A DNA stretch of 64,000 nt, taken from the IMG/VR virus record IMGVR_UViG_3300027754_000034, positions 186,001-250,000 of that record; one strand, given 5' to 3'. The position numbers and the translations under genes were made by a program. Shown piece by piece: positions 25,701-63,651 of the stretch. Within the stretch, counting starts at the first letter, position 1. Each line of letters starts with the position of its first letter. Below the pieces are notes generated by a model, which was given only the letters and a program-made list of their open reading frames with translations, was not told the DNA's origin and ran no database searches.

Positions 25701-25967
25701 ATGAGTATGTTAAAAATAGATGATTTCAGCTTTGGATTTTCTTCGTCCATAGATGACTTTTATTCGCCACCTAAGTCGATATCGTTAAATACTAATAGAA
25801 TTAAAATATCTAAATCTGCTGATTTAAGTGGGTTTGTGAGAATAGCTTCGGATAGATTGGTTCGAATTTCTCAAAATGACTTTTGGAAACTAGCCAAAGA
25901 TGAAGATACGGGCGAGTTTTTTATAGAACGTTTAACTGATGATATTGATGGTCCGGTAAAGGGATGA
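25701..25967 (+). CDS. Small putative virion protein
   Basis: 88 aa, RIAS motif, GAGG RBS. Confidence 0.6.
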   Translation: MSMLKIDDFSFGFSSSIDDFYSPPKSISLNTNRIKISKSADLSGFVRIASDRLVRISQNDFWKLAKDEDTGEFFIERLTDDIDGPVKG

Positions 25968-27046
25968 TTATGGATCATAACGAGATCTGCCGCATAGCAT
26001 CTAAGATATCTGCATCCTCAAACGTTAGGACTGCGGGAAAAATAGAATTTATACGAGATCAAGGTCCTCTACGGCGAGATGTTCGGGCGAACGACTTTGA
26101 ATGGTCTTCTGACTCTTTAAAAAATTTAGCCAAAATATTATGGGCTGCGCAAAGAGCTCATAGTTATTCGGTGTCTGCTTTAAGATTATTTTCTAAAATG
26201 CCTTCTAGTCAGTTTAGCCCGGATGGGTTGCTGGGCGGAAGGGGTTATATTCAACCTATTAAGGAATTAAGAAAATCTTTATCTCAGGCTTCAGAGGTTT
26301 TGTCCTCATTTACCGATACCCTTTACGATGAAATCAACGCTAGCCATTGGTCTGATTCAGAGACTGAAGATAGTAAAAATTTACTGAAGAATACTGAAGA
26401 AGTAAAAGATAACCCTGAAGCATTCGTCGAAGAGGAATATGAGGCGGAAGGAGAAACGGATTTTCATGAAACTAGTCCTTCGTCTTTAAATCCGTCGCCA
26501 GAAGATTTTCAGGATGAAATCGAACAACCAGACGAAGAATCTGATGCAGAAGATTCCGGGGGGTTTAGTCAACAAGCTTCGTTTGATCAGTACCCTTCCT
26601 TTTTTAAAAATACGCTTGCAAAGCAAAATGGAAGAGTACTAATGGGTACTAGTTCGTTACCTGTTAGCACTCTTCCTGGTCCCAGAGTGGAACATATCGG
26701 GCCTGGAGAATCAGTATATGGCTGGGTGAATGGTCCCGATGCGGTTCCCTCTGATGATCCCTCCTTAGAGGGATTTATTACTGATCAGCCAATATATGAA
26801 GATGTGTGTGCTGATGGTGTTTCTGGATATGAAAACCCAACAGACGGAGATAATACTTATCTTAAAAAAGCTTCATACTCTTTGTTACCTGGTTCTGAGA
26901 ATTTGAAAATAATGCCTTTTTATGATCGTAATCTGACTAAAGCTGATGTAGAATGGCTTATGGCGAACTCAAGACCAGATGTCCCAAAGTTATCTACAGG
27001 AGAAGTTACAGACAGTGACACATCATGGTTATGGAAGGACATTTGA
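25964..27046 (+). CDS. Putative internal head protein
   Basis: RIASKIS...RTAG leader, acidic linkers. Confidence 0.5.
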   Translation: MIMDHNEICRIASKISASSNVRTAGKIEFIRDQGPLRRDVRANDFEWSSDSLKNLAKILWAAQRAHSYSVSALRLFSKMPSSQFSPDGLLGGRGYIQPIKELRKSLSQASEVLSSFTDTLYDEINASHWSDSETEDSKNLLKNTEEVKDNPEAFVEEEYEAEGETDFHETSPSSLNPSPEDFQDEIEQPDEESDAEDSGGFSQQASFDQYPSFFKNTLAKQNGRVLMGTSSLPVSTLPGPRVEHIGPGESVYGWVNGPDAVPSDDPSLEGFITDQPIYEDVCADGVSGYENPTDGDNTYLKKASYSLLPGSENLKIMPFYDRNLTKADVEWLMANSRPDVPKLSTGEVTDSDTSWLWKDI

Positions 27047-28030
27047 ATGCCTTCTACATTGCCTTCTGAGTCCTGCTTGGATAAGACTGTAGATACTTTC
27101 GGTCTTGGTACTTATGATTACTCTCAATGGGGGTTTGATCATGGCGAGGATAGTAACAAGAAAAAATCAGAAAGAACTCTGCCTGATGATGGGGGACCTT
27201 TGGACCCTTTTGGACCTGATAGACTATTAAGTTATCCTACTATGATTTCCACTTCCCTCGTGCCTGGGGATTCTAGTAGACCGCCTTCCCAAAAAACTCC
27301 CCCTCCTTCATATTTAGACTCGGTAGTCCATTCAGTTTCTCAATCGAAACTTCCTCCGGAAGATCCTACTGTCGCTAGGTCAGATTATTATGATTATATG
27401 ACAACTAGCACCAAAGTAAATTCTTTTGATGACATGTTTTCTAATAGCGGCGATGATACATATACTAGTTCGGATGAAGATTCATTGCCTTCATTGCCTA
27501 AAAATGAGCAGGAATTCGATAACAACTTGCAGTCATTGGGTAACTACTGGTCGGGAATGGTGATTCAAGATCAATCTGGACCAGCAGGTTTTCCATCCAC
27601 TGAATTTGAGGATCCTCAAAGATACCAAAAAACTAATGCCTCGGAGAAAAATATGAAAAGAATGGCTACCGATATAGAATTGGTTAGGGGTTTGACAAAG
27701 TCCTTTCTTAAGGACTTTGGGAAATCAGAGTTAACTAGACGTCACGTAATGGCATTCCTACAGAAGAATAACCGTAATATGTATTTTGCGTCTGATGTAA
27801 TCAGATGCTTAAAATTAGACCATGATATTATAGTAAAGGATGTTTTGGACGAATTTCCAGTAAAGAAAGAAGCATCTACAAGCCGATTATCTTCAATACG
27901 AGACATATTGATTAGTTACGAAGTACCTAATGGGAAAAATCCTGAGGTTGCTTCCGAATGTCGACTAGCTGCTGCTAACATAAGCCATGTGTTGGCTTTA
28001 TTAGAAAGATATGGAGTTAAAAATGTCTGA
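27047..28030 (+). CDS. Putative virion protein
   Basis: Disordered Pro/Asp/Ser N-terminus, helical C-terminus after RMA. Confidence 0.5.
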   Translation: MPSTLPSESCLDKTVDTFGLGTYDYSQWGFDHGEDSNKKKSERTLPDDGGPLDPFGPDRLLSYPTMISTSLVPGDSSRPPSQKTPPPSYLDSVVHSVSQSKLPPEDPTVARSDYYDYMTTSTKVNSFDDMFSNSGDDTYTSSDEDSLPSLPKNEQEFDNNLQSLGNYWSGMVIQDQSGPAGFPSTEFEDPQRYQKTNASEKNMKRMATDIELVRGLTKSFLKDFGKSELTRRHVMAFLQKNNRNMYFASDVIRCLKLDHDIIVKDVLDEFPVKKEASTSRLSSIRDILISYEVPNGKNPEVASECRLAAANISHVLALLERYGVKNV

Positions 28031-30523: not shown

Positions 30524-32461
30524 ATGCCTATCAAAGAAGTTACTTATAAAAGTGCCCTGGTGGGTGAGGTCTCAAGTTTCATAGAGAAAAAGCGTAAGTC
30601 CAAATCTGGGGGTGAGGATGGTGATGTAGAATTTCTTCCGGTGATAGATTTTATAGAAAAATTTAAACTGTTACCTTATGGTCTTTACCCTGTACAAAAA
30701 TTGATTGTTAAAGCTTATTATAACGTTCCGTTAGATGATAAAAATAAATTAATAAAAATATCGGATAAGTTTAATGAAAGAATAATATATAATTTCACAG
30801 AAACTGAATATCTAAAATATCTTTATGATCAGGGTAGATGCAACATTCAAACACAAGATGGTATAGAAAGAAGAGAACTTTTGTTAGTGGTAGGCCGACG
30901 AAGTGGTAAAAGCGCTTTAAGTGCCATATTTGCGGCGTATGAAATATATAAACTATTAAAGAGAGGTAACCCTCAAGCATACTACGGTATGCCCGGAGGT
31001 TCAGAGATCAGAGTTCTTTGCGTAGCTAATGATAAAGATCAGGCATCTATCGTATATGGGGATGTTCAATCTCACGTAGAATCGGTAGATTACTTTAAAA
31101 GTTCCGTAGCTAATGCTACCCAGACATTCATGAAGTTTAGAACTCAGAATGATAGAGAACGATTTGCAGATTCCAATAAAGCCAGTATAGCGGCGTCCTT
31201 TAAAAGTTCAATAGCAAAAGGTCTTCGTGGTCGCGGTGTCATTTGTGCTATATTGGATGAGATAGCATTCTTTCAAGATACCGGATTTAGTAGTGGAGAA
31301 CAAATTTATAGGGCTTTAACTCCTGCATTAGCTCAATTCTCACCAAGAGACTCGCAGGACAAATTAAAACCTATCGGTCCTTCTGAAGGACGCATGATAC
31401 TAATATCATCGCCTGATGCAAAAGAGGGATTTTTCTATAGATTATATCAGACAGCCATGTCTAACAGCAAAGGCTCGTCTGATATGTTGCTCATTCAAGC
31501 TCCGACTTGGGAAGTGAATCCCACTTTGGATAGAAGTTATTACGAAAAGGAATATTATAAGAATTCAAAAGCATTCATGACAGAGCACGGGGCTGAGTTT
31601 TCAGACCGTGTTAGGGGGTGGATTGAAGATTCCAGAGATCTTTTGGAATGCGTGGATCCAAAGTTAAAACCTGTTGCTAAGGGTGTCGCAAGAGAAGTAC
31701 ATTTTGCTGGAATAGATGTTGGTCTGGTGAACGATGGTACAAGTATTGCCATTACAAAAATAAATAATGGTAAAATAGAGTTAGTTTACCATGAAACATG
31801 GTATGCCAAGAGGAAATGGAGTGATATAAATCCGCATTTAAAGGATCCTCTTACGTCTTATGCTCGCACACTTCAGGATCAAGAGAGAATAAGTATGTCT
31901 GAAATAGCCTCATGGTTTAAAGCTCTTTCAAACAGATTTTATATTCATAAAGCAATATTCGATCAGTGGAGCGGAATCGTATTTGAACAAGAATTACATA
32001 AAAACGGATTACGTCAATTTGAAATGAGAAATTTCTTTACTTCTGATTCCTCACAAATGTATCAATCTCTAAAAATGTTCATGTATAATAGGCAGCTTAG
32101 TATTTATGATTATCCATTACCAGAGTTGGAACCCGGGATGACGACGGGAAGACACTCACCTTTAATTTCTGAATTATTAGAATTACAAGCTACATCAGCA
32201 GGTAAAAATCTTATTTCTGTAGAGGCCCCAAAAGCCCCTGGAAAACACGATGATATGTCCGATGCTTTGGCACGTTCGGTATTATTAGCTTCGGAATATA
32301 TTAAAGAAAACCCAGGAATTCTAGATAAGAAGATAATCGGAACCGGTGTAGATCATTTATTGCCGGGTAGAATCCCTACGTATTCATCATTCCACAAATC
32401 AAGAATGAAATTACATGGTGCAAACACACAAAGAATAGTGCCGAAAAATAGATTGCGTTGA
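30524..32461 (+). CDS. terL: Terminase large subunit
   Basis: GRRSGKS Walker A, ILDEIAF Walker B, GIDVG and HDDMSDAL RNase H-fold nuclease motifs. Confidence 0.93.
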   Translation: MPIKEVTYKSALVGEVSSFIEKKRKSKSGGEDGDVEFLPVIDFIEKFKLLPYGLYPVQKLIVKAYYNVPLDDKNKLIKISDKFNERIIYNFTETEYLKYLYDQGRCNIQTQDGIERRELLLVVGRRSGKSALSAIFAAYEIYKLLKRGNPQAYYGMPGGSEIRVLCVANDKDQASIVYGDVQSHVESVDYFKSSVANATQTFMKFRTQNDRERFADSNKASIAASFKSSIAKGLRGRGVICAILDEIAFFQDTGFSSGEQIYRALTPALAQFSPRDSQDKLKPIGPSEGRMILISSPDAKEGFFYRLYQTAMSNSKGSSDMLLIQAPTWEVNPTLDRSYYEKEYYKNSKAFMTEHGAEFSDRVRGWIEDSRDLLECVDPKLKPVAKGVAREVHFAGIDVGLVNDGTSIAITKINNGKIELVYHETWYAKRKWSDINPHLKDPLTSYARTLQDQERISMSEIASWFKALSNRFYIHKAIFDQWSGIVFEQELHKNGLRQFEMRNFFTSDSSQMYQSLKMFMYNRQLSIYDYPLPELEPGMTTGRHSPLISELLELQATSAGKNLISVEAPKAPGKHDDMSDALARSVLLASEYIKENPGILDKKIIGTGVDHLLPGRIPTYSSFHKSRMKLHGANTQRIVPKNRLR

Positions 32462-32730: not shown

Positions 32731-33047
32731 ATAACAAGATTAGTCACGATTCACATGTAAATACCATCAATGCCCGCTTTAATGAATTCATATCCAAAAG
32801 CGAAAAAATATCGAGAGAGTTAGAAATGTTATTAAAGGATTTGGAATCGTTTGATCATACCTTCTGTAGGACTTCTTTAGGTAAAGAGCTGAATGTAAAG
32901 GGTAATCTAAAACTTGATAATTTTAAGAACATTTTAGGGTCTTCTTGCGCTAATATTAAGAAGTTCGCTTTAGGTAAGCGAAAGATTTCGTTGGCTTTTG
33001 ATAATAGGGATGATTTATCCGATTCACGCAAGACAGGGCATTCATGA
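32727..33047 (+). CDS. Hypothetical protein
   Basis: 106-aa ORF, overlapping start/stop on both sides. Confidence 0.55.
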   Translation: MNNKISHDSHVNTINARFNEFISKSEKISRELEMLLKDLESFDHTFCRTSLGKELNVKGNLKLDNFKNILGSSCANIKKFALGKRKISLAFDNRDDLSDSRKTGHS

Positions 33048-34840
33048 CTAAGCGCAAGAGTAACTCCTCAAATATTAACAAAAATGGTATGCCTGTAGTG
33101 AAAGTGGAAGATCAGATATCTTCTAAGCAGAAATTAACTAAACTGGAACGCATAGCTCGTCGCGAAATGCGTCAATCCATAAGAGTAGCTGCTTATAGTG
33201 GTGACTATGGAAATATGAACGGTGGTAATATCAAGTCCGGAGATTCTTCTTTTTATTCACCTCAGTTATCCACAGACTTTTTAGAGCTTCCGCAGTCTGA
33301 GAGAGAAAAGCGGGAGTTATTTAGATTTTGGTACAATACCCACCCTATTGTTGGTGCGGCCATAGATTTCCATACCGATGTCCCTATGAGCAAACTTCGT
33401 TTAAGTTTGCCGAAGGGTAAGGATCTAAAAAGAAATAAACAGATTCTTCATTTTTATCAGGAGATGTGTAGCAGAATACAGTTGTTCCAAACTTTATATG
33501 ACACGACACATGAATATTGGTTAAATGGAAATGTTTATTTGTTTTGCGAAGACCACGATCTTACAAATGAAATACCCGATGATCTGTTGTCCGAGGAAGA
33601 ACATGAAGAAGTCGGAGAAATAGATTATGCAGGCAGGACCACCACTAAGGAAACTACTAAGCGGGTTTTAAAACCCGAGGCAGTAAGATCCGATAATATT
33701 AGAGAATTCATCAAAGAGCACTATATGGGATGGCAAAGGATACAGATCCTCCCTCCTGAACAAATAAAATTAGAGGTGTTCCAATATACGAATAAAGCTC
33801 GTATGGAGCTAATCCCTTCTGAAAAGGATCGTTTATTAGTGTTAAGGGCTTCAGAAGGCAGTGACCCTGAATCCAATAAAATAGCTGATGATATTCCAGA
33901 ACAGATTCGAGAAAATCTGTTAAGTGGACAGCCTATTCCTCTAAATACTTCTCCATATGATGACTTCTTATGTTCATCATTTTGTTATCATTTGTCTCAC
34001 AAGAAGGCGGCTTATGATACCAGAGGAATCTCGTTATTGGAACGATGCTTACGTACTCTCATTTATCAGGATAAACTACGCCAGGCCCAGACTAGCATTG
34101 CTTCTAGAGCGATGACGCCTAAACGCATTGTTTGGGCAGATAAAATGTCGGAGCCCGATACTGACTCTTTAAGGGATCAAATAGACCAAGCCATAGTTGA
34201 CCCTGACTTCACCATAGTGACTAACTTTGAAGTACACTGGGATGAAATAGGATCTCGTGATAGATTATTAGACTTAAGCACAGAGTATGAAATCACGAAT
34301 AAAATGCTTTATATAGGTTTGCGTGTAACTGAAAGTATGTTAACTGGAGAGTCCTCCTACTCGGGTGAGAAAATTCATTTAGATGTAATGAATACTATGT
34401 ACTTGTTATACCGGGAAAGAATGTCGGAATTCGTTGAACAATGGTTATTTAAACCGGTAGCCGAGAAAAAAGGATTTTTTGAAGAAGATGAATATGGAAA
34501 CAAAAAGTTACTCTACCCTCAATTACAATTTACACGATTAGCATTGCGGGATAATTCTGAGTTGCAGGATTTCATGTTTAATTTATATCAAAAGGGTTCT
34601 CTCCCCGTATCATTCATATTGGAGCTACTTAATATAGATTCTGATGATGCTTTAGAGCAGTTAAAGAAGGATATGTTTACTCCAAATGATTCTACTTTTA
34701 ACGAATTCTTAAAGGGAGTTTTAACCAGGGCTGGTGAAGAAGCAATAGAAAAGACTGACGCCCTGGATAGGATCATCAAAAATGCTGGATTAAATCGAGT
34801 GGATAAAAAATCAGATAGATTCGGAAAGGAAGAATCATAG
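33044..34840 (+). CDS. Portal protein
   Basis: Downstream of terL; HPIVGAAIDFHTDVP and RTLIYQDKLRQAQ..IASR..TP motifs as in Bxz1-type portals. Confidence 0.8.
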   Translation: MTKRKSNSSNINKNGMPVVKVEDQISSKQKLTKLERIARREMRQSIRVAAYSGDYGNMNGGNIKSGDSSFYSPQLSTDFLELPQSEREKRELFRFWYNTHPIVGAAIDFHTDVPMSKLRLSLPKGKDLKRNKQILHFYQEMCSRIQLFQTLYDTTHEYWLNGNVYLFCEDHDLTNEIPDDLLSEEEHEEVGEIDYAGRTTTKETTKRVLKPEAVRSDNIREFIKEHYMGWQRIQILPPEQIKLEVFQYTNKARMELIPSEKDRLLVLRASEGSDPESNKIADDIPEQIRENLLSGQPIPLNTSPYDDFLCSSFCYHLSHKKAAYDTRGISLLERCLRTLIYQDKLRQAQTSIASRAMTPKRIVWADKMSEPDTDSLRDQIDQAIVDPDFTIVTNFEVHWDEIGSRDRLLDLSTEYEITNKMLYIGLRVTESMLTGESSYSGEKIHLDVMNTMYLLYRERMSEFVEQWLFKPVAEKKGFFEEDEYGNKKLLYPQLQFTRLALRDNSELQDFMFNLYQKGSLPVSFILELLNIDSDDALEQLKKDMFTPNDSTFNEFLKGVLTRAGEEAIEKTDALDRIIKNAGLNRVDKKSDRFGKEES

Positions 34841-34865: not shown

Positions 34866-36638
34866 ATGACCATATACAAAACATCGGATAGTTCCCTCTC
34901 AGGTTATGAGAGGGAAGATAAAGAAGTACGCCGAAATAGTCCCACAGGTCGAAAACCACACAGGAAAAAGAAACATACTACGAGTCGCCGTTCACCACGA
35001 CCTGACCAACGTCGCACAAGGATTCAGGAAAAAGACCCCGATTTAAAGAAGGGTGTGGAGGCAGACCCTGATTTATCATTGAATTATAAGCACTCATCTT
35101 TACGATCGTTTTCAAGAATAGCTTTCCGTATTTCTATAGGGGCTGTCCCCCCAGAAGTGATGTCTCAGTACTTTTCCTCTATTCCCGTTTTAAAAGATTT
35201 CTTAGTAATATTAAAAGGTATTAGTGAGAAGTTAAAAAATGAATACTTAATATTCCTAGAAAGTAAATATGGATTCTCGGGTTTTAAACAGGTTTATGAT
35301 GATGTAAATGATGAACATGGGCCACCGTTAATGGAAATTGGTGATTACCCTGATTCTCAGCGCGAGGAGATTGAAACAATAAACACGGGTGTCTTGAATG
35401 AAGTAAAAAAAGGAAAGTTAGAACAAAAAAAGAAGTATAAGATAACGGATTTTAATAACATAAAAAAACTTTTGAACAAGATATCTAAAGATTATGAATC
35501 TTCTACACCTATTTTTAAAGCAGGTATTAGAGAGACCATAAAAAGTGCCTTAGAGAAAGAGTATGATTATCCAAAGCCATTCATAGATTTTCATATAGCG
35601 AATCCTGACTCGCTGGAAGACCTATCTCAAAATTTGACCAATTTAGAAAACACCGGGCAGATTAGTATTCCTGATGTTTCGGATAAACAAAAGTTATTAG
35701 CATTTCTCGCTTTAGCTTCGCTTCATAAATCATTAGAAGAAAACCCAGTTAATCCGGATTGGACAAAAATGTCAGCTAAAATACAGGAATTAGTAAATAA
35801 TGTAGTCAATGAGTTTGAGTACATGGAGTCTTTAAATATGTTAATGAAACAATATGATGCGAATTCTAAAAGATTAATGGCGGATATTGAAAAAGATATT
35901 GAAGATGATTTAGATGATGATGATGTAGATGTACAGCTCCCCGAAAATTCAGGTTTATTTAGTTTCTTGCAGAACTGGGAAAAAGAGACAGATGACGTTT
36001 TAGAAGGGTTTGATGAATGGATAGGGGAAGTGAAAGATTTTGAATCTGAATTAAATGATATCTCAAAAGAGATCTCTAAAAATAGACCCCATTTTTGGAC
36101 AGAGTTGTCAAAAGCATACTTAAAATACTTTGAGAAAAACCATCCGGAGAAGGTCCCTGCTATTTTAAGGCTGAGCACCGGCTCACAGTCTTCTAATGAC
36201 AAGAGTATTTTGAAAATGCGTAAGACAGCTGAATATCATGGTACTAAAATACAGGGAAACCCAGATGGTGTTACCAACACTGGGTGGAAATCTATAGATA
36301 AAAGGTATATTGGTAGTATTCATCACAAGTCAATTCTTGATACTGCTCGTTCCATGCTTAAGGATGGTCCTTGGTTTGAATATTCTTGGCGTGGTGGTAG
36401 TGTAGATGCTCCTGTGAGAGCTGCTTTAGATATCGCCATAGCTACTGCCGATGAAAGTATATATCAAAGTAAAATAGATGCTCCTACTTATGAGTATTTA
36501 TTAAACAAATTAGCCTCTTGGGAATACGACTTATTTTCTGATACATCATTGAATATGCCTAAATCTCCTAATAAGCGCAAGGCTTCTAACGTCAGTATTT
36601 ACGACGAAATGGTCGAATTCGCTTCATTTATAAAATGA
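34866..36638 (+). CDS. Large head-associated protein
   Basis: Basic Arg-rich N-terminus, acidic middle, RKTA and RKAS motifs. Confidence 0.5.
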   Translation: MTIYKTSDSSLSGYEREDKEVRRNSPTGRKPHRKKKHTTSRRSPRPDQRRTRIQEKDPDLKKGVEADPDLSLNYKHSSLRSFSRIAFRISIGAVPPEVMSQYFSSIPVLKDFLVILKGISEKLKNEYLIFLESKYGFSGFKQVYDDVNDEHGPPLMEIGDYPDSQREEIETINTGVLNEVKKGKLEQKKKYKITDFNNIKKLLNKISKDYESSTPIFKAGIRETIKSALEKEYDYPKPFIDFHIANPDSLEDLSQNLTNLENTGQISIPDVSDKQKLLAFLALASLHKSLEENPVNPDWTKMSAKIQELVNNVVNEFEYMESLNMLMKQYDANSKRLMADIEKDIEDDLDDDDVDVQLPENSGLFSFLQNWEKETDDVLEGFDEWIGEVKDFESELNDISKEISKNRPHFWTELSKAYLKYFEKNHPEKVPAILRLSTGSQSSNDKSILKMRKTAEYHGTKIQGNPDGVTNTGWKSIDKRYIGSIHHKSILDTARSMLKDGPWFEYSWRGGSVDAPVRAALDIAIATADESIYQSKIDAPTYEYLLNKLASWEYDLFSDTSLNMPKSPNKRKASNVSIYDEMVEFASFIK

Positions 36639-36925
36639 ATTATAAATATCATTATTCAACGGATTATCTACATAAATTAGTGGACCATGAGTACGTAGGA
36701 CAAGTAGTAAATGATAAAGATAAGAAACCCCTTTCTATCCTAATAGGAGTATTAGGAGCCATAGAAAAGGGTGGAAAAACAGTTGACTCAGATGAGTCTT
36801 CAGTAGGTATTGCTCAACATTATAGCAGGATTCTTCTGTCACCTCGTAATGTGCTGTTGGAAAACAAAGACTTTAAAAAGATTAGTGAATTGATAAAAAA
36901 GTTTAATAATAGTCATAAGAAATGA
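36635..36925 (+). CDS. Hypothetical protein
   Basis: 96-aa ORF. Confidence 0.5.
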   Translation: MNYKYHYSTDYLHKLVDHEYVGQVVNDKDKKPLSILIGVLGAIEKGGKTVDSDESSVGIAQHYSRILLSPRNVLLENKDFKKISELIKKFNNSHKK

Positions 36926-37076: not shown

Positions 37077-37379
37077 ATGTCAGTAGACCACAACCAAAGA
37101 ATCGCTGCGGAAATTAAGGAATTAACTCACGTGGCTTATGAGAACCCCGAAGCTCGTGAAGTTCTCTTGCCAATAATTGCAGCTAAGATGAAGATGCTAA
37201 AGAAGCCTAAGGAAGCTCCTAAGAAAGCTCCTAAGAAAGCTTCACCTAAGGAAGCCCCTAAGAAAGTTTCACCCATGGAAGCTCCTAAGAAAGCTCCTAA
37301 GAAAGCTCCCAAGAAAGGTTCACCCAAGAAGAAGCGTAAGGCTTCTGTCGATATCACCCTTTCCGATTCTCGGTGGTGA
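37077..37379 (+). CDS. Histone H1-like Lys/Ala/Pro-repeat protein
   Basis: APKK/SPKK repeats in the C-terminal half; GAGG RBS. Confidence 0.6.
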   Translation: MSVDHNQRIAAEIKELTHVAYENPEAREVLLPIIAAKMKMLKKPKEAPKKAPKKASPKEAPKKVSPMEAPKKAPKKAPKKGSPKKKRKASVDITLSDSRW

Positions 37380-37424: not shown

Positions 37425-37916
37425 ATGATTCCGAAGAGCGTTGCGAACAAAGTATTGAGTAATTTAGATTCAGCGGCTTCTCGCATTGAGTCCCTAGTGA
37501 ATGAGGGAAAAATCGGTGCAAGAGTGGCTTCGACATTAGTGCGTGATTTAGACTCCTTTGCAGACCGTTTCGAGGTGGCTGCATTTGGTAAGGAAAATCT
37601 TAGTCGTCGCATATCTACCCTTATGAAGGGAGATAAGGATGAGGAGCATTACATGAAGTCTTTCGATAATGTGAACGCTCCTTTGAAGGTTCAGGCGGAT
37701 GAGTCTTACATGCATGAGTCTGGTGACTCTGCTCGTTGGGATAGTATTCCAACATTTGATCAAGATAACTCTTCAGCGGTCATGAATCGCCCTGAATATG
37801 CAGTTGTAGACCAGAGTAAATGGTCAAACGACGGAAAAAGCGTCGCCCAACCGTCATTAATATCAGGGCCTCTTAAGAAGCATAAAGCTTCAGGTCCTAA
37901 GACCTGGGCTGACTGA
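37425..37916 (+). CDS. Putative virion protein
   Basis: 163 aa, GGAG RBS, in the head operon. Confidence 0.55.
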   Translation: MIPKSVANKVLSNLDSAASRIESLVNEGKIGARVASTLVRDLDSFADRFEVAAFGKENLSRRISTLMKGDKDEEHYMKSFDNVNAPLKVQADESYMHESGDSARWDSIPTFDQDNSSAVMNRPEYAVVDQSKWSNDGKSVAQPSLISGPLKKHKASGPKTWAD

Positions 37917-37942: not shown

Positions 37943-38647
37943 ATGAACACGAGATTCGCCTTCGTAGATGAAGTATTATATTCCAAGGAATTTAATACTG
38001 GTGATTGTGTACGCAAGACTGGACTTCGTGATTTCGTTTTAACTCCGTATGCCGGGCGTGTGCTTTATAGTGATACTGATACCGGGGTGGTAGTTGTTCA
38101 GTGGCCTTGGGGAGCCGAGAACAACTATCCCTCGGAATTGGTAATCGATAAATCGGGTGATTTTGGGACTCCGAACATGGATCAGTCTTATTCTACTTGG
38201 GAATCCACTAGATATAAAGATGATCCCGATACATTAAAGAATGATGTAAAGTGGCGAAAAAGTTTAGCTTCTGATATTTCTGAGGAATTTAGTCGATTAA
38301 CCCTTCCAATATACAAATCTGCTTGTAAGGCTTGGTATCAAGAGTTACCAGAAATGGAAGTTCTGGTAACTCTCTCTAGTATTTATTCACCGAAATATGG
38401 TTTTGAACCAGTACGAAAATCAGTAGATGATGTGTATAGTTCTGGTCGTCGGATCGCTATTTATTGGGGAAGCAGTAATAGAAAGTATAGAGTAACTCAA
38501 TCAGAGATGGTAACTGGGAAGTACAAATGTCCTCGTTGTGGTAATGGTCTAAAGCCTAGAACCTTCAGACATTTAAAAAGATTAATGTCATGTGGAGGAC
38601 CTTCAGGATGTGGTTTTTCAATACATAATAAGGATTTATTAAAATGA
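37943..38647 (+). CDS. Hypothetical protein with C-terminal zinc ribbon
   Basis: CPRCG...CGGPSGC. Confidence 0.55.
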   Translation: MNTRFAFVDEVLYSKEFNTGDCVRKTGLRDFVLTPYAGRVLYSDTDTGVVVVQWPWGAENNYPSELVIDKSGDFGTPNMDQSYSTWESTRYKDDPDTLKNDVKWRKSLASDISEEFSRLTLPIYKSACKAWYQELPEMEVLVTLSSIYSPKYGFEPVRKSVDDVYSSGRRIAIYWGSSNRKYRVTQSEMVTGKYKCPRCGNGLKPRTFRHLKRLMSCGGPSGCGFSIHNKDLLK

Positions 38648-39696
38648 ATTCAATCTCCAAGATTCTAAAAATTAGTGGCTCTATTTCGAATACTCGCTTT
38701 AATGGCTTGAGATTGTCTGATGACTCGTCTTATTGGGGGACTCAGAAAACAAACGGGTTCTTTTACTCGTCTTTAGGGTATCTTGTAACTGAGGCTAAAG
38801 ACGTACTCATAGATTTAAAAAATAAGATTCGAAAGTTATTGTCTGATTCTAAAAATGCTAGAGAATTTGCTGAATCCTTAGATAAGGAAAAGGGAAAAAA
38901 GATAATCGATTTAGAGTCGATACTTAAGGCTCACAAGTTGTGGGAGGATAAGTTAAAGAAACAAGCTTCTTCTCGCCTAGCCATTTTTGGGCTTAAAAGT
39001 CCATTACAAACAATTCTTGATACAAAAGATGATGCTCTTGATACGCCACCAAGTGTAATCGAGCAGCAGTTTAAGTATAATAAGAAATTTTTTAACTTGG
39101 TTAAAAAGATTCAAGATGAATATGAAGTATTAATACAGAATCCTTCAGAAGATTCAGAAGATAATGCAGAAAAGCTGCTTCGGGATATAGATGAAGCGTT
39201 AGACATGTCATCAGGAATCCTATCTAAAATTTACCATGAACCGTCGTCCAAGGCTGTTCCTAAAAAGCCTCTTCCACCCAAACGGAAGCCTGAATATACA
39301 GAATTAACGGATGAACAATTAGAATTTATAGAGCCGGAGCAGGAATATGCGGAAGTAACTGATGGACAGTTACAATTTGTAAAGGATCCACCTCAAACAA
39401 AGTTTAAAAGTCGTCGTAATATAAATCGTGACAAAAAGGAAGAAGAAAAAGCCATAAAGAATCTTCCTGAAATGCGTTCTTATTTTGCAAGGTTACTGAG
39501 AATGAAACCAGAATCTGCGGCATATAAGAGTTCGCTTAAGAAGTTATTTAGTCTGTTAAAAGATAACTTTGGCGAAGAAGCAGATTTGAATACTGTCTTA
39601 ACGGCATCGTCTCACATATCATCATTAATACGTGATAATCAGAGAGTGAGAAATGATGTAGTGGTTTATTTATCAACTTTATGGGGAACTTTATAA
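38644..39696 (+). CDS. Putative internal head protein
   Basis: Helical, charged; SKILKIS leader; KQAS motif. Confidence 0.45.
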   Translation: MNSISKILKISGSISNTRFNGLRLSDDSSYWGTQKTNGFFYSSLGYLVTEAKDVLIDLKNKIRKLLSDSKNAREFAESLDKEKGKKIIDLESILKAHKLWEDKLKKQASSRLAIFGLKSPLQTILDTKDDALDTPPSVIEQQFKYNKKFFNLVKKIQDEYEVLIQNPSEDSEDNAEKLLRDIDEALDMSSGILSKIYHEPSSKAVPKKPLPPKRKPEYTELTDEQLEFIEPEQEYAEVTDGQLQFVKDPPQTKFKSRRNINRDKKEEEKAIKNLPEMRSYFARLLRMKPESAAYKSSLKKLFSLLKDNFGEEADLNTVLTASSHISSLIRDNQRVRNDVVVYLSTLWGTL

Positions 39697-39726: not shown

Positions 39727-41238
39727 ATGCCTCGTAAGCATTATGCAAATGCAATAATTTCTCGACAAAACGTTCCATTTGATGAGTGGATGGACGTATT
39801 GAGAGGACAGAACGAGGGGGCTGTTCCTAAGGATCATATTAATCGGGTAGCAAAAACCGTCTTGCGGAAGTGCGACCCGAATCAGTATTTATTATCCCAT
39901 TCCACTATAGTAGCATCTGTTGATACGATTGAACCCAAGGGAACCAAGACCGGACGGTTAATGAACCGTGGAGTACAGATCGATGTTAGATATCCGGATT
40001 TTAGGATAAAGTCCGGTTGTTTACCGATAATTAACAATAATGGAGACGCTTGGTCTCGTTCATTGTTACTTTCTTCTTATCGTACATTTATAGGTTCTCC
40101 GAATTACTTAGAACATGTCCAGATACCTGAATTATCGAAAGGTTTCATAGTTGATGCTGTGGCCCGTGACTTGGGCGACTCTTGTTATGTCGACATTCTA
40201 GTGGCAACGGACCGAAAGCACGGTCAACTGGTAAATGATATTCTTACCGGGGACATTACTGGAATGTCAATGGGCTGTATTAGTCTATTTACTATATGTA
40301 CTAAGTGTGGAAATGTTGCTTCAGACGATTCTCAGTTATGTCCTTGCATACAATATGAGGGTAAGCATACCGAATTTATTGATGAACAAGGTAATAAACA
40401 GAAAATTGCAGAATTAATTGGGCATGTAATGGTGCCAAACAGTAACCAATTTATTGAAGCAAGTTGGGTGAAGAATCCAGCTTTTACTGGTGCCGTAAGA
40501 AGAAATTTCTTAAATCAAAATATGATTCAAACAGCAGCAAAGATCAATGACGCTGCTGAAGTTTATGAAATCAAGCGATCTATGCCTGATTTAGATGGTA
40601 TGAAGAGAGCTGCTTTTACTTATAGAAAATCGGATGATGACGAGACACAGGATATCGGAGACGGTCAGGAGCCTTCTCAATCACAGAATGGTCCTTCCTC
40701 AGATTCCGAACGACCGGTCAAGAGTGACCAGCTGAATTCTCTTATTGATAAAGTTCAGGAGCAACTCCTGAGCTTAATAATGGAGAATCTCTCTGATCGG
40801 CTAAAACCGAAGCCTGAGGATGTGGGAACCGTAGTTTCTGCTCCAGTAGATCTAACTGCCGGAAACGATAATATCATTCATAGTTCGGCAGATTTCGAGC
40901 GCCATGTAAAGCGCAAATTCGCTAGTTCTACATCATTAGCGGACTGGGCAATTAAAACCCATAAGATTGTTCATGAAGGAGGAGTTAAATCTATAAAAGC
41001 GGCACGTCTAAAACCGCAAGATTTAATAATCCTTTCATGGGTTGTTGATAATGTTAATGGCAGGAGATACGCTTCTGACCTTTATCAATTGTCAATTAAA
41101 ATTGGGCCTTTGAGCAACTATCCAAACGAGATATCCTTTTTAACAGCGTGTTCTATCAAATTTGGTCGCGATTTAACGGCCAAAGAGGAGAGATTCTTAG
41201 TCTGGAAGGGTAAAATCGCGAGTATTGCGTGCTTTTAG
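39727..41238 (+). CDS. Capsid maturation (prohead) protease with Zn-finger insert
   Basis: NNNGDAW, YLEH (catalytic His), MSMGC (catalytic Ser), CTKCGN...CPC, FIEASWVKNPAF; sits before scaffold and MCP. Confidence 0.75.
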   Translation: MPRKHYANAIISRQNVPFDEWMDVLRGQNEGAVPKDHINRVAKTVLRKCDPNQYLLSHSTIVASVDTIEPKGTKTGRLMNRGVQIDVRYPDFRIKSGCLPIINNNGDAWSRSLLLSSYRTFIGSPNYLEHVQIPELSKGFIVDAVARDLGDSCYVDILVATDRKHGQLVNDILTGDITGMSMGCISLFTICTKCGNVASDDSQLCPCIQYEGKHTEFIDEQGNKQKIAELIGHVMVPNSNQFIEASWVKNPAFTGAVRRNFLNQNMIQTAAKINDAAEVYEIKRSMPDLDGMKRAAFTYRKSDDDETQDIGDGQEPSQSQNGPSSDSERPVKSDQLNSLIDKVQEQLLSLIMENLSDRLKPKPEDVGTVVSAPVDLTAGNDNIIHSSADFERHVKRKFASSTSLADWAIKTHKIVHEGGVKSIKAARLKPQDLIILSWVVDNVNGRRYASDLYQLSIKIGPLSNYPNEISFLTACSIKFGRDLTAKEERFLVWKGKIASIACF

Positions 41239-42514: not shown

Positions 42515-42525
42515 AATAAAATTTT

Positions 42526-42561
42526 AACCCCAGATGGAGACTAAGGTTTTCATCTGGGGTT
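42526..42561 (+). terminator. Hairpin terminator after the scaffold gene
   Basis: aaccccagatg...catctggggtt followed by T run. Confidence 0.7.
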
Positions 42562-42720
42562 TTAGATAAAGAAACGCAGACTTTTACAGAACCTAGGGAA
42601 GTTTTTAGGGAAATATAAACAACAATTTGGACGGATTCGCGGAATAGGCCGGACTGAATTCACAGATTGTAAAAATTCATTGTTTACCCGAAAAGCTGAC
42701 TGAAGGACTGGAGTAATAAA

Positions 42721-43371
42721 ATGGGAATCGGCGGACAAGCATCAGGCGATTTTAAGCTTGACAATAGTGCGCTGCGTATCCTCTACTCGCTTATCAAGGA
42801 TACTATTCCTTCTTTAGCGAGCGATGGATTTACGCAGAATAATCCTTCTGTCGTAGTGGCAGCTGCGAACGCTTCAACAACCTTTCCTGTGGACGTCAAG
42901 AAGGGCGTTCTTGGTGGTTCTTGTGCGTTCCTTCGTCCCGACGTGGGTTCTAACGTAGTTGGCGGTGCCGTAGTCGATGGCATGGGCGACTATTACGTTG
43001 GTACGCGTCCAGTAGGTCTTTTCATCAATGACGCCAAGGGTGGCGCATATGAGAACACACCTTCGGTGGCTTCGGGCAAATGCCCGTTCCTTCGTGGTGG
43101 TTCCGTTGGTGTTAAGATTTATGAGACCCAGAAGCAGATTGGTGCTGATGATGACCTCACCTACTTGGTTGGTGATTTCCTCTACGCCTCAGTCAATGGC
43201 CTTCTGACCAAGAACTGGGAAGACTCGTACGAGAAGCAGTGGATTGACACTGCTACTACGGGCAGCGGCGCGGGTGGCGTTGCAATTGAACCGGATGTCA
43301 CCCGTATGGGTGTTGTCCTTTCACCCCCAGATGCAAACTCATCGGAGCTGTTCCTCGCGCTCTTCTTCTGA
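42721..43371 (+). CDS. Capsid decoration/minor capsid protein
   Basis: Immediately upstream of MCP; YENTPSVASGK...YET...GDFLYAS.NGLLT; strong codon bias. Confidence 0.6.
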   Translation: MGIGGQASGDFKLDNSALRILYSLIKDTIPSLASDGFTQNNPSVVVAAANASTTFPVDVKKGVLGGSCAFLRPDVGSNVVGGAVVDGMGDYYVGTRPVGLFINDAKGGAYENTPSVASGKCPFLRGGSVGVKIYETQKQIGADDDLTYLVGDFLYASVNGLLTKNWEDSYEKQWIDTATTGSGAGGVAIEPDVTRMGVVLSPPDANSSELFLALFF

Positions 43372-43398
43372 GCCTAGGACAGAGAAAGGACTATTATT

Positions 43399-56422: not shown

Positions 56423-57853
56423 ATGAATGGAGAAAAACTAGCTAAATATTTAGCTACGTTAGAGCCTGGGTATACGAATAAATCCAGAATAACTTATACT
56501 TGTGAGATGTGTGGTATTCAAAATCACATTATTTTAAAATGCTTTAAAGAAAAAATATCTAAGGGCTCGTTATATTGTAAGAAGTGTTCACTGAAGCAGA
56601 AATGGCAAGATGAAGAATATCGATCTAAAATAAAGAAAAGTCAAGAAATAATATGGAATGAAACTGATACGAAAAATAAAATATCGGAAAAAAGCAAGAA
56701 ATTGTGGCAAGATCCCGAATACAAATCTGCTCAGTTAAAAATTCACTCCGACCCCGAATATCTAAAATCAGCTAGAGAACATTCAATAGACAATTGGAAG
56801 AGTGTAGAATTCAGAGAAAACCAACTGAAAACTCGAAATACTCCTGATTTTAAAGCAAAACAGTCACAATCAATGCGTGATTTATGGAATTCTAACAAAT
56901 ATGTAGAAAAAACCCTTCTGTCCTTATCAAAAAAATTCAGTAGTGACTTTAAATCATCGTTAGAGATCATAACATCTAATATTTTAACTGCTCTTAGTAT
57001 TTCATATAAAGAGCAGTATGTAGTAGGACCCTATATTTTTGATTTTTATCTTCCCGATTTTAAAGTATATATTGAATGTCAAGGAGAGTATTGGCATTCA
57101 TTAGAATCTGCTGTTAAGCGTGATGCGAGTAAATCTACTTATCTAAGGAAGGCTCATTCTGATAGTAAGTTTTTGTACTTAAATGAGGTAGATTTCTGCA
57201 ATCCTACTTTAATCAAGCAAAAAATTATTAGTATTTGTGGTTCGACTGCCATAACACAGGTTAAGTCGTTCGAATTAAAAAGTGTAGATATTAAGTTAAT
57301 TAAAAAGGATGATCGGGATTTTAATTTAGCACATAACTTGTTAACTAGTTTTCATTATGCGGGTTTTGGTAGAGCTGCTAAGGTAATATTTGGAGCATAT
57401 AAGGATAAGGAGCTCATAGCCGTATGTAAGTTTTCACCGCCAATAAGACAGGAAGTGGCCACCTCTTTAGGCATTAGTCCTAAAAATATGCTTGAGCTTG
57501 ATAGGTTCTGTATAAAACCAGATAGGCAAATAAAGAATTTTGCTAGTTGGTTTTTATCGAGAGCAGCTAAACTCATTTTTAGTATAGATTCTTCAAAATC
57601 TCACTTGGTGTCTTTTGCTGATAGCACTTACAATCACTTAGGAACTATTTATAAAGCAGCCAATTGGGCGTATGTTGGTGTTGTTTCCCCTGATTATTAC
57701 TACGTTAATGGTCAGGGCTGGATATTACACAAAAAGACATTATATAATCAAGCTGTAAGAAATAAAATGAGGGAGTCTGATTATGCTGAAAAGCATCATT
57801 ATGTAAAAATATACGGAAAAGAAAAATATAAATTTATTCTTGCTAAGTCTTGA
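56423..57853 (+). CDS. Zn ribbon/helical repeats + Vsr/DUF559-like endonuclease + Mom-like GNAT fusion, copy C (intact)
   Basis: CEMC..CKKC; W.D.EY helical repeats; DFYLPDFKVYIECQGEYWH; FHYAG, LELDRFC, VSFADSTYNHLGTIYKAANW. Confidence 0.78.
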   Translation: MNGEKLAKYLATLEPGYTNKSRITYTCEMCGIQNHIILKCFKEKISKGSLYCKKCSLKQKWQDEEYRSKIKKSQEIIWNETDTKNKISEKSKKLWQDPEYKSAQLKIHSDPEYLKSAREHSIDNWKSVEFRENQLKTRNTPDFKAKQSQSMRDLWNSNKYVEKTLLSLSKKFSSDFKSSLEIITSNILTALSISYKEQYVVGPYIFDFYLPDFKVYIECQGEYWHSLESAVKRDASKSTYLRKAHSDSKFLYLNEVDFCNPTLIKQKIISICGSTAITQVKSFELKSVDIKLIKKDDRDFNLAHNLLTSFHYAGFGRAAKVIFGAYKDKELIAVCKFSPPIRQEVATSLGISPKNMLELDRFCIKPDRQIKNFASWFLSRAAKLIFSIDSSKSHLVSFADSTYNHLGTIYKAANWAYVGVVSPDYYYVNGQGWILHKKTLYNQAVRNKMRESDYAEKHHYVKIYGKEKYKFILAKS

Positions 57854-57891: not shown

Positions 57892-59025
57892 ATGGATAGT
57901 CATGGGTTTGTATTAACAGAAGCTGCTCAATATGCATTTAAATGTCAGGATGTTTATCCTGACATTTTGTCTTTTGCTGCTGCAATCCCAGAACATCTCA
58001 AGCCGATATTTCTTTTACCCGTTAAGATGGAAGCTATTGTGGCTTCTGAATCTAACTATTTGATAGCTACTCGAATAGCAGCGTGTGCTATGGATGGATC
58101 CACCCCTGAGGGTGATCTTTTTAGTTATCAATCATTCTTATATAATGATATAGAACCTACTATTCCTAATTCATCTCCGGGATCTATTTTCGATATAAGT
58201 GACGCCGATAGTCTTACCCATCATCAAGAGTATAATTTCGATCAAAATATTCAAGTTCCGACTGATACGAGTTATATGTCTGATGTTGATATGACTCAAT
58301 ATTTCAGTTATCCATATAGAACGGTAGAACAGCCCGTAAGAAAATCCTCACTGAACTCCCATCATGTTGCTTTAATCAGATTAGCACTAAATCCGGATTA
58401 TTTGGAAACGAAAACTCCCAGAAAAATAAAGAAAAATGCTGATGAATGCACTGTAATTTTGATAGATTATGATCGGAAGACACGAACTTTTACATTTAAT
58501 GTGGTTTGTGGTAGCGATAAAAAAGTAGTAAAAGCCGCTTTATCTGATGTAAGAAATGTTGTACTGGTTTGCAATTGCGAATTCTGGAGATACAATGGTC
58601 CTGATTACAATGCGAAAACCAACAAATTTTTATTAGGTCCCCCCGTTGGTCGTGCTACTCCCCCAAATATAAGAGATCCTAAGCGACAATATTGGCTTTG
58701 TAAGCATACGTATGCTGTCATAGTTAGATTAGACGATTTCTTGAAGGACATTTCTTCGGAAAATCTAGAACTTGACGAAAAGTCCTTGTTAAATGTAGTA
58801 GATAGGGAGTATGATAGGTTAGCAGAGAAGACTCTAGTTCCTCTTGAAGATGTCGAGCAGGACGTGGAAGTAGATTGGGAGGGATTTGATGGGCAACAAC
58901 AAATCCCTGTTTATTTTGATGAAGATGAGCAGCAACAAACTCCTGTCGATATGGAACAGGATCAACAAGATGTAATCCAACTCACTCAGGATGACGTCCA
59001 ATTTTTACAGCAACAGCAAAAATAA
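57892..59025 (+). CDS. SWIM-type Zn-finger protein with acidic/Gln tail
   Basis: CNCEFW...CKH. Confidence 0.55.
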   Translation: MDSHGFVLTEAAQYAFKCQDVYPDILSFAAAIPEHLKPIFLLPVKMEAIVASESNYLIATRIAACAMDGSTPEGDLFSYQSFLYNDIEPTIPNSSPGSIFDISDADSLTHHQEYNFDQNIQVPTDTSYMSDVDMTQYFSYPYRTVEQPVRKSSLNSHHVALIRLALNPDYLETKTPRKIKKNADECTVILIDYDRKTRTFTFNVVCGSDKKVVKAALSDVRNVVLVCNCEFWRYNGPDYNAKTNKFLLGPPVGRATPPNIRDPKRQYWLCKHTYAVIVRLDDFLKDISSENLELDEKSLLNVVDREYDRLAEKTLVPLEDVEQDVEVDWEGFDGQQQIPVYFDEDEQQQTPVDMEQDQQDVIQLTQDDVQFLQQQQK

Positions 59026-61543: not shown

Positions 61544-61557
61544 GAGAGCGTAGTATT

Positions 61558-61596
61558 TTATGCCTACCCAGGGTGTGAATCCCCGGGTAGGCATAA
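61558..61596 (+). terminator. Hairpin after the 60743 gene
   Basis: ttatgcctaccc...gggtaggcataa. Confidence 0.6.
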
Positions 61597-61640
61597 TCGT
61601 ATTAGTGGTTCGATGAGTATTGTGTGTTGGAAAATTTAAA

Positions 61641-61874: not shown

Positions 61875-61878
61875 GTGA

Positions 61879-62172
61879 TTATTGACTTGCTATTTGCCGC
61901 AATTTTTTTGGTTTAGATTCGAATATTCCACTATCTAGGTGGGTGGATTCAGCTTTTCCCTGCATCTCGTCTTTTTTGTCACGTATCATATTTGCTAAAT
62001 AACCGAGGTTTTCCGTTATTTCAAGTTCTTTAGGTGCAGTCAGTACTCTATGAATTTTATCTAATATTTCGATTAAGTTCTCAGAATACCAAAATTCTTT
62101 ATTCTTAGGTATTCCTGACCAATTGAGTTCCTCGATGCCAGCTATTCTGAAGGAGATTTTTCTCAGATTCAT
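61879..62172 (-). CDS. Small protein with MNLRKISFRIA leader
   Basis: ATG 62172 gives a leader matching other virion-type proteins. Confidence 0.55.
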   Translation of the reverse strand: MNLRKISFRIAGIEELNWSGIPKNKEFWYSENLIEILDKIHRVLTAPKELEITENLGYLANMIRDKKDEMQGKAESTHLDSGIFESKPKKLRQIASQ

Positions 62173-62225
62173 AATTCTTGCTCTATTCAAGAGCCTTTAT
62201 TAGATTACTAATAATTAATTCAATT

Positions 62226-62609: not shown

Positions 62610-62610
62610 T

Positions 62611-63294
62611 ATGACCGTAGTTTATAAGAATCAGCAGCTTAGTGTAGGCGAGATAAGCTTGCAGCTACAGAATGCTGAAGGGCAAATCATTAATGTCAAT
62701 TCCGTCACATACTCTATTTATGCGTTAGATGGGAAATTAGTTTCGGGAAAATCTTTACCAGCCATTTTGGCTGTTGATGGAAAATACTATATTCCTTGGG
62801 AATCCAATATACCAAATGGTACTTATAAAATTTTGTGGGAAATCAATACAAATGGCATCCAGATAGAAATCAAAGAATCATATATTTTTGTGTTAGATAA
62901 GGCGGCTTATCCTAAATCTCCTTCAAGTGTCTGTTGTATTCTGCCTTCTAGTATACCTAATCCATTATCAAAAGTCTTTATATCAGGAACAACATTAGGT
63001 CCTGAAGATTTAAATATGTACTTGAACGATTCAATAACAGGTCTTTTCATCGACCCTTATTCAATATATTGGACGATATTTAACTGTCGCGGTTGTATCG
63101 AAACCCGGAAAACTGTTGGGTCTAAATACGCTGTTGGTAAATTTTACGCCCCGTACACCGTAATGGGTCCGACTGCTGAATATGATATAGTATGGGAATT
63201 TAAAGAGAATGTGAATTCACCTCTGATGTCAAAAACTCAGAGATTCTCAGTGTTAAATACTACAAACCTAAAATTTAAAGAGTGTGACTGTTAA
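62611..63294 (+). CDS. Putative structural protein (duplicated Ig-like domain)
   Basis: Two similar halves ending G.Y.I.WE. Confidence 0.5.
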   Translation: MTVVYKNQQLSVGEISLQLQNAEGQIINVNSVTYSIYALDGKLVSGKSLPAILAVDGKYYIPWESNIPNGTYKILWEINTNGIQIEIKESYIFVLDKAAYPKSPSSVCCILPSSIPNPLSKVFISGTTLGPEDLNMYLNDSITGLFIDPYSIYWTIFNCRGCIETRKTVGSKYAVGKFYAPYTVMGPTAEYDIVWEFKENVNSPLMSKTQRFSVLNTTNLKFKECDC

Positions 63295-63651
63295 CGTTTA
63301 TCAAACAGTTTCTTGGTCTTTCTGGTCTCTCTGTCTACTGTAGTGTTTCTATCGAGATCTGCTTCCTCGGAGAGGAGGTTAGCCATGTCCTCGGCTTCAT
63401 TTTCATCATCATCATCAGTTTCAGGTGCTGGTTTTTCATACTCTCTAAAGAAATAATCTAATCTTTTATCTAGTATGGTAAGGTTATCAACCTATTGTTT
63501 CCGGGTCTTTACCTGATAAAGCACCCGACATACCCCAAGCCACGAGATTAGAAGTCTCTGTTTTCCAAAAATCAGGATTTTTAGGTAAGTTATCGAATTT
63601 AGGTATTAAATCTAATGATGCGATCCGAGTAGCTATCCTTTTAAGATTCAT
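63291..63651 (-). pseudogene. Frameshifted gene absent from the ORF track
   Basis: MNLKRIATRIAS...PETIG* (63651..63487) continues in the +1 frame as VDNLTILDKRLDYFF...KKLFDKR*, ending at 63291 and overlapping the neighbour's stop. Confidence 0.55.

Follow-up and report, generated by a model that had tools for sequence, protein, structure and literature searches.

Why do otherwise unrelated proteins of a single phage begin with nearly the same basic amphipathic peptide? The question is raised by a 64-kb stretch of DNA, here called the window (64,000 nucleotides, bases 186,001-250,000 of the 257,205-bp contig IMGVR_UViG_3300027754_000034), in which a sequence-only reading had noticed a recurrent N-terminal leader built around the tripeptide Arg-Ile-Ala (RIA) and had taken it for a portable tag that loads cargo proteins into the phage head. 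The contig has a G+C content (GC) of 40%, is a linear virus record of about 60% completeness in IMG/VR, and was present in one freshwater-metagenome DNA run only. The capsid protein encoded in the window shares 77% identity with its counterpart in LR745208, an uncultured phage of 485 kb, 45% with that of Tunturiibacter phage Tunturi_5 and 38% with that of Bacillus phage G, and its IMG/VR relatives number 481, on contigs of up to 618 kb. Therefore, we place the window in a jumbo phage of the phage-G-like assemblage; by the kinship of its capsid protein, this is an uncultured freshwater jumbo phage related to phage G. Below, genes in the window are named by their first coordinate in it, and genes elsewhere by their contig coordinates.

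All seven quoted peptides are present where the sequence-only reading had placed them. A strict search pattern, [RK]I[ASG]x[RKSAE]I[ASG], was tested on the 329 greedily called open reading frames (ORFs) of the whole 257-kb contig against 500 shuffles of each protein. It occurs 11 times, versus 0.6 times in the shuffles (maximum 5), and seven occurrences fall inside the first 35 residues, where shuffling predicts 0.09. Since this pattern had been picked after the data were seen, an unbiased tripeptide test was added. Among 3,847 tripeptides, RIA was the top-enriched one at residues 2-26 of the contig ORFs, with 14 occurrences there versus 26 in the other 70,665 positions (5.1-fold, P=1.2e-6).

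Could short basic amphipathic N-termini nevertheless look alike by chance or through low complexity? The weakest examples, ORFs 38644 (E=0.03) and 25964 (E about 1.8e-3 to 5e-3), would indeed be insufficient alone. However, the shuffle and tripeptide statistics, profile matches at E values down to 1e-37 in 1.8 billion proteins, and the retention of the leader across relatives with GC ranging from 0.37 to 0.60 leave this explanation a negligible probability, and for the core set it is already refuted. The signal sits in the protein, because codons differ between copies of the leader and the DNA upstream of the tagged genes is not conserved. The same two observations rule out a DNA or RNA element at the gene starts. 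A shared promoter of the tagged genes was also considered, and k-mer enrichment gave only a rare TGTAAAGTA word in 8 scattered copies.

Two related modules with the same core cover the examples of the sequence-only reading. Type A is a strictly N-terminal amphipathic helix of 12 residues with the consensus M-[ND]-[LF]-x-[RKQ]-I-A-[SAT]-R-[IV]-A. Residues L3, I6, A7, I10, and A11 of this helix line up as a single hydrophobic stripe with Arg or Lys at its sides, giving a hydrophobic moment of 0.6-0.7 at a mean hydrophobicity near zero, and large aromatic residues are absent. Types B and C are helix-turn-helix modules of 33-45 residues (consensus L-R-R-I-A-S-x-I...NP..LV). In type B, represented in the window by ORF 46041, the core L-R-R-I-A-S-x-I is followed by the turn S-K-N-P-D-R and by a second helix, L-V-A-R-D-L-K-K-V-L-A-A. 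Across 130 anchored proteins, the module is conserved at 33 positions in a row, several of them at 98-100%, and at its end conservation falls from about 99% to background within one residue; the linker beyond is only mildly rich in Glu, Asp, and Gly. Type C is the variant L-Y-R-I-A-S-E-L..(D/E)P-L..Y-E-L, which relatives have on the product of the gene just upstream of the prohead protease. An AlphaFold2 model of 46041, built from 121 sequences, places helices at residues 8-24 and 30-44 around the turn, with a predicted local distance difference test score (pLDDT) of 88-93, followed by the linker and a small beta domain. This predicted fold, a basic helix-turn-helix of about 30 residues, is of the kind known from the phage P22 scaffolding protein.

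How the short and the long forms relate is indicated by an orthologue in the relative L097, in which a type-A leader of 11-12 residues replaces the 45-residue type-C hairpin (E values to the orthologues of 1e-34 to 1e-66). Furthermore, the type-A and type-B consensus cores agree at 6 of 9 positions, the profile alignment with hhalign being weak (P=0.002 over ten columns). Because of this swap and the agreement of the cores, we take type A to correspond to the first helix of the hairpin. The sequence-only reading had regarded its examples as one class of leaders. They are indeed related, but fall into two classes, type A (63487, 61879, 25964, and, in degenerate form, 38644) and type B (46041).

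The idea of a portable tag on unrelated proteins is strongly supported by comparison within the contig and with relatives. Beyond the leader, BLASTP shows no relationship among the bodies of the contig bearers except in two cases: a small three-member family of 61879, 63487, and 74604 (the last outside the window), with the leader, a spacer, and an FW..E motif common to 61879 and 63487, and a recent duplicate in the form of a near-identical 45-residue fragment at the contig end. In five related records, the type-A profile matched 15, 11, 6, 3, and 2 proteins, nearly all directly at the start codon and with bodies that show no mutual similarity. A search with the type-B profile in 1.84 billion cluster representatives found 1,067 proteins at E<=1e-3, of which 424 reach E<=1e-10. 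Among the best 150 of these 1,067 matches, the module starts within residue 16 in 144, is present twice in 21, and lies at the C-terminal end in 13. The 132 of these 150 proteins with enough cargo sequence fall into 93 unrelated BLAST clusters. In relatives, the same leader heads dozens of bodies that are unrelated to one another, and one orthologue may carry the long or the short version. Some proteins have no cargo at all: P0124, P0129, P0137, P0140, and P0163, of 88-97 amino acids (aa), consist of two type-B modules and an Ala/Pro-rich linker. AlphaFold2 predicts two independent hairpins for P0124, the linker having a pLDDT below 50 and the whole a predicted template modeling score of 0.44.

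These numbers also bear on the view that the bearers are a diverged paralogue family, in which the N-terminus was kept for folding, stability, or expression and has no role in targeting. The groups 61879/63487/74604 and 113821/256952 and one cargo cluster that holds 25 of the 132 proteins are in its favor. Nevertheless, we think it very unlikely in view of the 93 unrelated cargo clusters, the occurrence of the module N-terminally, C-terminally, in tandem, or with no cargo, the drop of conservation within one residue, the alternative tag versions on the same orthologue, and the lack of codon conservation between copies. That a portable docking module exists is, in our judgment, nearly certain, and, judging from the sequences, the RIA leaders are such a module, lineage specific and terminal.

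The cargo bodies are, by their predicted properties, small, mostly acidic, fast-evolving ORFans joined to the module by an unconserved linker. The type-A-tagged proteins (n=44) have a median length of 143 aa and a median cargo isoelectric point (pI) of 4.9, versus 6.4 for the genome. In 43 tagged proteins scanned, the only Pfam domains seen were a C39-like peptidase in one protein, SWIM fingers in two, and GNAT in one; the rare cargo domains also include LRV/HEAT repeats. A Mu-like protease/scaffold Pfam family gave one match (E=7e-5) among the 150 type-B proteins, which two follow-up scans did not trace to any member. The module itself has no counterpart in the resources searched: neither Pfam nor PHROG holds a family over residues 1-45 of any bearer scanned, DUF7433 gave sub-threshold matches in two proteins only and none in five genomes, and the type-B module had no match among the cultured phages of the phage collection searched.

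Profile matches at E<2e-3 identify 14 bearers in the contig, seven of type A and seven of type B. With the weaker or internal cases 38644, 34866, 37077, and 57892 and a C-terminal copy at contig position 3250, the number rises to up to 19, so that 4-6% of the contig ORFs are tagged. Outside the window, bearers lie at contig positions 70941, 72574, 74604, 113821, 115138, 148870, 177266, 253197, 253670, and 256952. Two short fragments near the contig end look like remnants of cargo-gene turnover: 256952-257089 repeats the tagged N-terminus of 113821 (19 residues, 95% identical), and 253197-253313 repeats the tagged N-termini of type-B genes.

Within the window, a canonical type-A leader heads a 54-aa ORF on the minus strand (63487-63651; residues 1-12, nucleotides 63616-63651; E=3e-6 to the type-A profile). 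The 97-aa ORF at 61879-62172, on the same strand, matches equally well (E=3e-6; leader at nucleotides 62137-62172), and its start is the ATG at 62172, giving the family-typical MNLRK, rather than the upstream TTG at 62190. On the plus strand, the 360-aa acidic ORFan 25964-27046 has a type-A-like leader at residues 3-18 (E=1.8e-3). Its one orthologue, in LR745208, has an N-terminus that is amphipathic yet not of the RIA type, and Pfam, PHROG, and the ESM Atlas gave no lead on this protein. The type-B bearer, a 166-aa ORF at 46041-46541 on the plus strand, carries the module at residues 6-48 (nucleotides 46056-46184), ahead of its short beta domain; the ESM Atlas gave nothing for it, nor did a Foldseek comparison of the model with the PDB. 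Finally, the 377-aa protein 57892-59025 on the plus strand has an internal LIATRIAA helix at residues 57-64 (nucleotides 58060-58083), and its orthologues have RIASRIA at the same place. It is probably one of the two SWIM zinc-finger members, although a direct Pfam scan of this protein found no family.

What does the module dock to? The head genes of the window lie on the plus strand and include those for the large terminase (30524-32461; PHROG 2 and 9), the portal protein (33044-34840; PHROG 16240), the HK97-fold major capsid protein (43399-44286; PHROG 2522), and a 503-aa prohead protease (39727-41238; PHROG 18299, head maturation protease), in whose alignment His130 and Ser181 are invariant. 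Sequence and profile searches of the PDB gave no match for the protease, and neither did Pfam, T4-type models included. An acidic 411-aa protein with a poly-Glu tract occupies the position of a scaffold gene (41279-42514), and a conserved, scaffold-like 163-aa head-module protein has an N-terminal helical hairpin (37425-37916); the type-B profile resembles this hairpin only weakly (P=0.011).

Several features connect the tag to these genes. The gene just upstream of the prohead protease, which encodes a conserved, K/E-rich helical protein, is always tagged, with type C or type A in at least nine relatives and a degenerate copy in the window. In the window, its product is the 350-aa protein 38644-39696 (plus strand), a candidate scaffold or core protein, which is K/E rich and helical, has the degenerate leader KILKISGS, and shows weak homology (E values of 3e-5 and 1e-4) to the same-position family of relatives with canonical type-C or type-A leaders. 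Another bearer is the 590-aa portal-adjacent protein 34866-36638. Its internal SRIAFRISIG, pointed out in the sequence-only reading, is an IAxRIA-type helix at residues 81-92 (nucleotides 35106-35141, plus strand) that follows a very basic N-terminal stretch, and inspection by eye located an equivalent helix at the same place in most of 22 orthologues; the strict pattern at this position matches none of the 22. In relatives, the conserved C-terminal domain of the portal-adjacent protein is followed by another module, which is type-C-like. A further quoted example, the 100-aa ORF 37077-37379 (plus strand; motif RIAAEI...ENPEAR..LLPII, with a K/P/A-rich basic tail), is not a stand-alone leader protein but is homologous to the C-terminal part of the relatives' single large portal-adjacent protein. 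ORFs 34866-36638, 36635-36925, and 37077-37379 together correspond to this one protein of 730-878 aa, and the gene is apparently split here.

In two subclades, islands of tagged genes follow directly on the capsid gene. A complete 427-kb relative has eight consecutive type-A genes on the same strand, starting 0.6 kb downstream of the capsid gene, and in about 12 loci, the window's 46041 included, a distance of 0.1-5 kb separates the capsid gene from type-B genes downstream.

Parallels in neighboring lineages were found. A sister subclade with about 78% capsid identity, including LR745208, uses a different leader of about 30 residues (type D; M-T-x-L-R-S-K-L-I-R-L-A-H-x-N-P-E-L-R-P-x-L-L-P-L-L-K-E-A). 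It is present on 11, 16, 10, and 8 proteins per record in four of five sister records (E values of 1e-9 to 1e-23), and the fifth, of 618 kb, has 2 weak matches only. It is mostly N-terminal and at times internal, tandem, or C-terminal, and one sister-clade record has five genes with this leader at 1.6-7.6 kb downstream of its capsid gene. No homologue of the type-D cargo was found in the window's genome or subclade, and in the phage collection the leader matched uncultured LR745208 only. A profile-profile comparison of types B and D was not significant; because homology could not be shown, we treat the type-D leader as analogous to the RIA modules. In phage G (NC_023719), eight ORFs (gp10, 13, 17, 20, 38, 53, 56, and 57) start with a basic peptide of the MKRL[IV]KK type, all within 9.9-39 kb around the head genes, and there is one weak further match in the 497 kb.

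Of the readings considered, the likeliest is that the tag is an address label for the assembling head and that the tagged proteins are encapsidated, a reading to which we give a probability just short of even. The conserved Leu/Ile/Ala stripe would bind one conserved phage-encoded receptor, most likely a part of the assembling prohead; candidates are scaffold or core proteins and the inward-facing side of the HK97-fold capsid protein, which is very conserved. Through this one handle, accessory cargo would be built into the head together with the scaffold-like head proteins. In the long forms B and C, the type-A helix is extended through an (N/D)P turn into a second helix, and the two-module proteins would serve as bivalent bridges. 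A more far-reaching version, in which a tag of 12-45 residues serves a general encapsidation system that fills the head with dozens of rapidly evolving, small, acidic effectors in each genome, and more than a thousand distinct ones over the whole clade, to be injected along with the DNA, we regard as a tentative possibility, on the unlikely side.

For the proposal that the tag loads cargo into the head, the evidence is circumstantial: the tag on the gene upstream of the protease, the helix in the portal-adjacent protein, the islands after the capsid gene, and the parallel in phage G speak for it, but other tagged genes are scattered and lie on either strand. In the contig, 70941, 74604, 113821, and 148870 are distant from the head genes; in LR745208, 9 of 11 tagged genes lie far from them; and at distances of up to 10 kb from the capsid gene there are on average 0.05 tagged genes per kb, a density no higher than genome-wide. 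The median cargo pI of 4.5-4.9 is unlike that of the basic internal proteins of phage T4. Moreover, a search for a conserved residue past type-B position +16 found none, only the mild excess of Glu, Asp, and Gly, and type-A leaders are followed by varied sequence with no conserved cleavage site. All of these observations weigh against loading into the head. Removal of the tag by the prohead protease, as had been proposed by analogy with T4, finds no support, given that no fixed residue follows type B and that the module also occurs C-terminally and in tandem. Co-folding of the 54-aa tagged protein, the capsid protein, and the 163-aa and 411-aa proteins gave interaction scores (ipSAE) of 0.04 and 0.06, which carry no weight either way.

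The scattering of tagged genes over the genomes and over both strands would fit a module that docks its bearers to some other common hub in the infected cell, such as the membrane, a replication or transcription factory, or a chaperone or protease that recognizes N-termini. The cargo, too, is small, acidic, and ORFan, as are many early host-takeover and anti-defense proteins, and its rare domains (C39-like peptidase, GNAT, SWIM, and LRV/HEAT) are enzymatic or regulatory. However, the tag is fixed on conserved proteins of the head module, and its islands are co-oriented with and abut the capsid gene. The low mean hydrophobicity and lack of large aromatic residues make the module unlike membrane-targeting helices, and no ClpP, considered as a candidate reader of N-terminal tags, is encoded in the record, itself only about 60% complete. 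We consider a hub away from the head unlikely, if still a serious competitor.

The same clustering beside capsid and decoration genes might instead mean that the module anchors small proteins on the outside of the capsid or virion for decoration or display. Many decoration proteins are acidic like the cargo, and the two-module proteins with Ala/Pro linkers could bridge neighboring capsomers in the manner of cement proteins. Yet the tag is found on helical scaffold-like proteins by the protease gene and also on the portal-adjacent protein, whose strongly basic N-terminal region seems suited to DNA binding; both would be expected to lie within the head. The peptidase, GNAT, and SWIM domains among the cargo suggest intracellular action. 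An outer anchor is, in our view, distinctly unlikely.

Loading into the head, the reading that we favor, has precedents, and the RIA modules differ from each of them. In T4, the bearers of the capsid-targeting sequence (CTS) are the internal proteins IPI-III and Alt, and the cleavage site is (L/I)-x-E. These internal proteins enter the scaffolding core through an N-terminal CTS of 10-20 residues, which is portable to foreign proteins (PMC5694885). As in the RIA system, a short conserved N-terminal peptide is carried by unrelated, fast-evolving accessory proteins of a large myovirus, and the 12-residue type A, N-terminal on seven contig ORFs, fits the size of the CTS. To our knowledge, the RIA consensus has no similarity to the T4 CTS. 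In contrast to the CTS, the RIA tag lacks a conserved cleavage site and is also used C-terminally, internally, and in tandem, two differences that count against loading into the head by the T4 route. The RIA repertoire is also far larger (at least 14 bearers in this genome and more than 1,000 clusters), its cargo is acidic, and the window protease matches no T4-type Pfam model.

The scaffolding protein of P22 binds coat protein through a helix-turn-helix, and 80alpha gp46 and SaPI1 CpmB share terminal helices; such elements are sufficient to recruit cargo to the procapsid. Types B and C resemble them as basic amphipathic, predicted helix-turn-helix modules of about 30 residues on scaffold-like head-module proteins, but are N-terminal rather than C-terminal in most bearers and show no sequence relation. 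Encapsulation peptides of microcompartments and cargo-loading peptides of encapsulins, whose shells have the HK97 fold, are likewise short and terminal. They share with the RIA modules the short amphipathic helix or peptide at the N- or C-terminus, the unconserved linker, and the diverse cargo; in contrast, they serve cellular compartments with one or a few cargo enzymes, whereas here a virus carries dozens of ORFan cargoes, and the motifs are unrelated. Phages phiKZ and SPN3US contain many inner-head proteins whose N-termini are thought to target the prohead, and SPN3US gp53 and gp54 have an identical 15-residue N-terminus (PMC5694885). Unlike the RIA leaders, the propeptides of these phages are mostly longer than 100 residues and cut at (S/A/G)-x-E sites, and no portable module is common to tens of proteins in this other phage lineage.

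The surroundings of the tagged genes show signs of mobile elements and repeats. The prohead protease gene encodes 900-1,346 aa in many relatives. In L026 (5106-7850), the one relative checked, the gene includes an intein that contains a LAGLIDADG homing endonuclease. The insertion point is apparently directly behind the invariant G-M-S-M-G|C, the motif with the putative catalytic Ser; the protease of the window is intein free. Two Mom-family/HNH-type ORFs are present in the window (45051-45893 and 56423-57853), the first located after the capsid gene and before 46041, an arrangement that looks like the entry of a homing element into the cargo island. The region 41279-44286, containing the scaffold-like, decoration-position, and capsid genes, has a GC of 0.51-0.57 versus 0.40 for the genome, and the capsid protein is at least 85% identical across relatives with GC of 0.37-0.60, which suggests block exchange or, alternatively, very strong constraint or codon selection. 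Repeats were found at three sites. Tandem repeats of 96 and 111 nucleotides (85-92% matches, local GC of 0.49) at 22429-23423 lie inside an 823-aa ORF (22197-24668) that matches head-decoration, tail-fiber, and virion-structural PHROGs; a repeat of 12-27 nucleotides coding for K, P, and A at 37206-37330 makes up the basic tail of 37077; and GAG runs together with a 60-nucleotide and a 9-nucleotide repeat occur at 41931-42313 in the acidic protein 41279.

Short transferable peptides that address proteins to a shell are in themselves of a known kind, exemplified by the T4 CTS, scaffold helix-turn-helix elements, and microcompartment and encapsulin peptides. The RIA sequence family appears to be undescribed, as do its architecture in two sizes, its placement at either end of a protein, and its scale, and no mention of the RIA motif was found in the literature searched. 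If the module is an encapsidation signal, the tag would mark the whole set of injected or internal proteins of uncultured, widespread huge phages, readable from sequence. This set would hold hundreds of small acidic proteins, natural candidates for anti-defense and host-takeover factors acting at infection. It would further mean that HK97-type jumbo phages independently evolved a short, portable capsid address as in T4, and foreign proteins could be loaded into large capsids by means of a 12-residue handle. Should encapsidation prove general, this would be by far the largest known arsenal of prepackaged phage proteins, with an address peptide that is minimal and probably transplantable. Even with another receptor, a docking module on about 5% of the proteins of a phage, absent from curated families, points to an undescribed hub.

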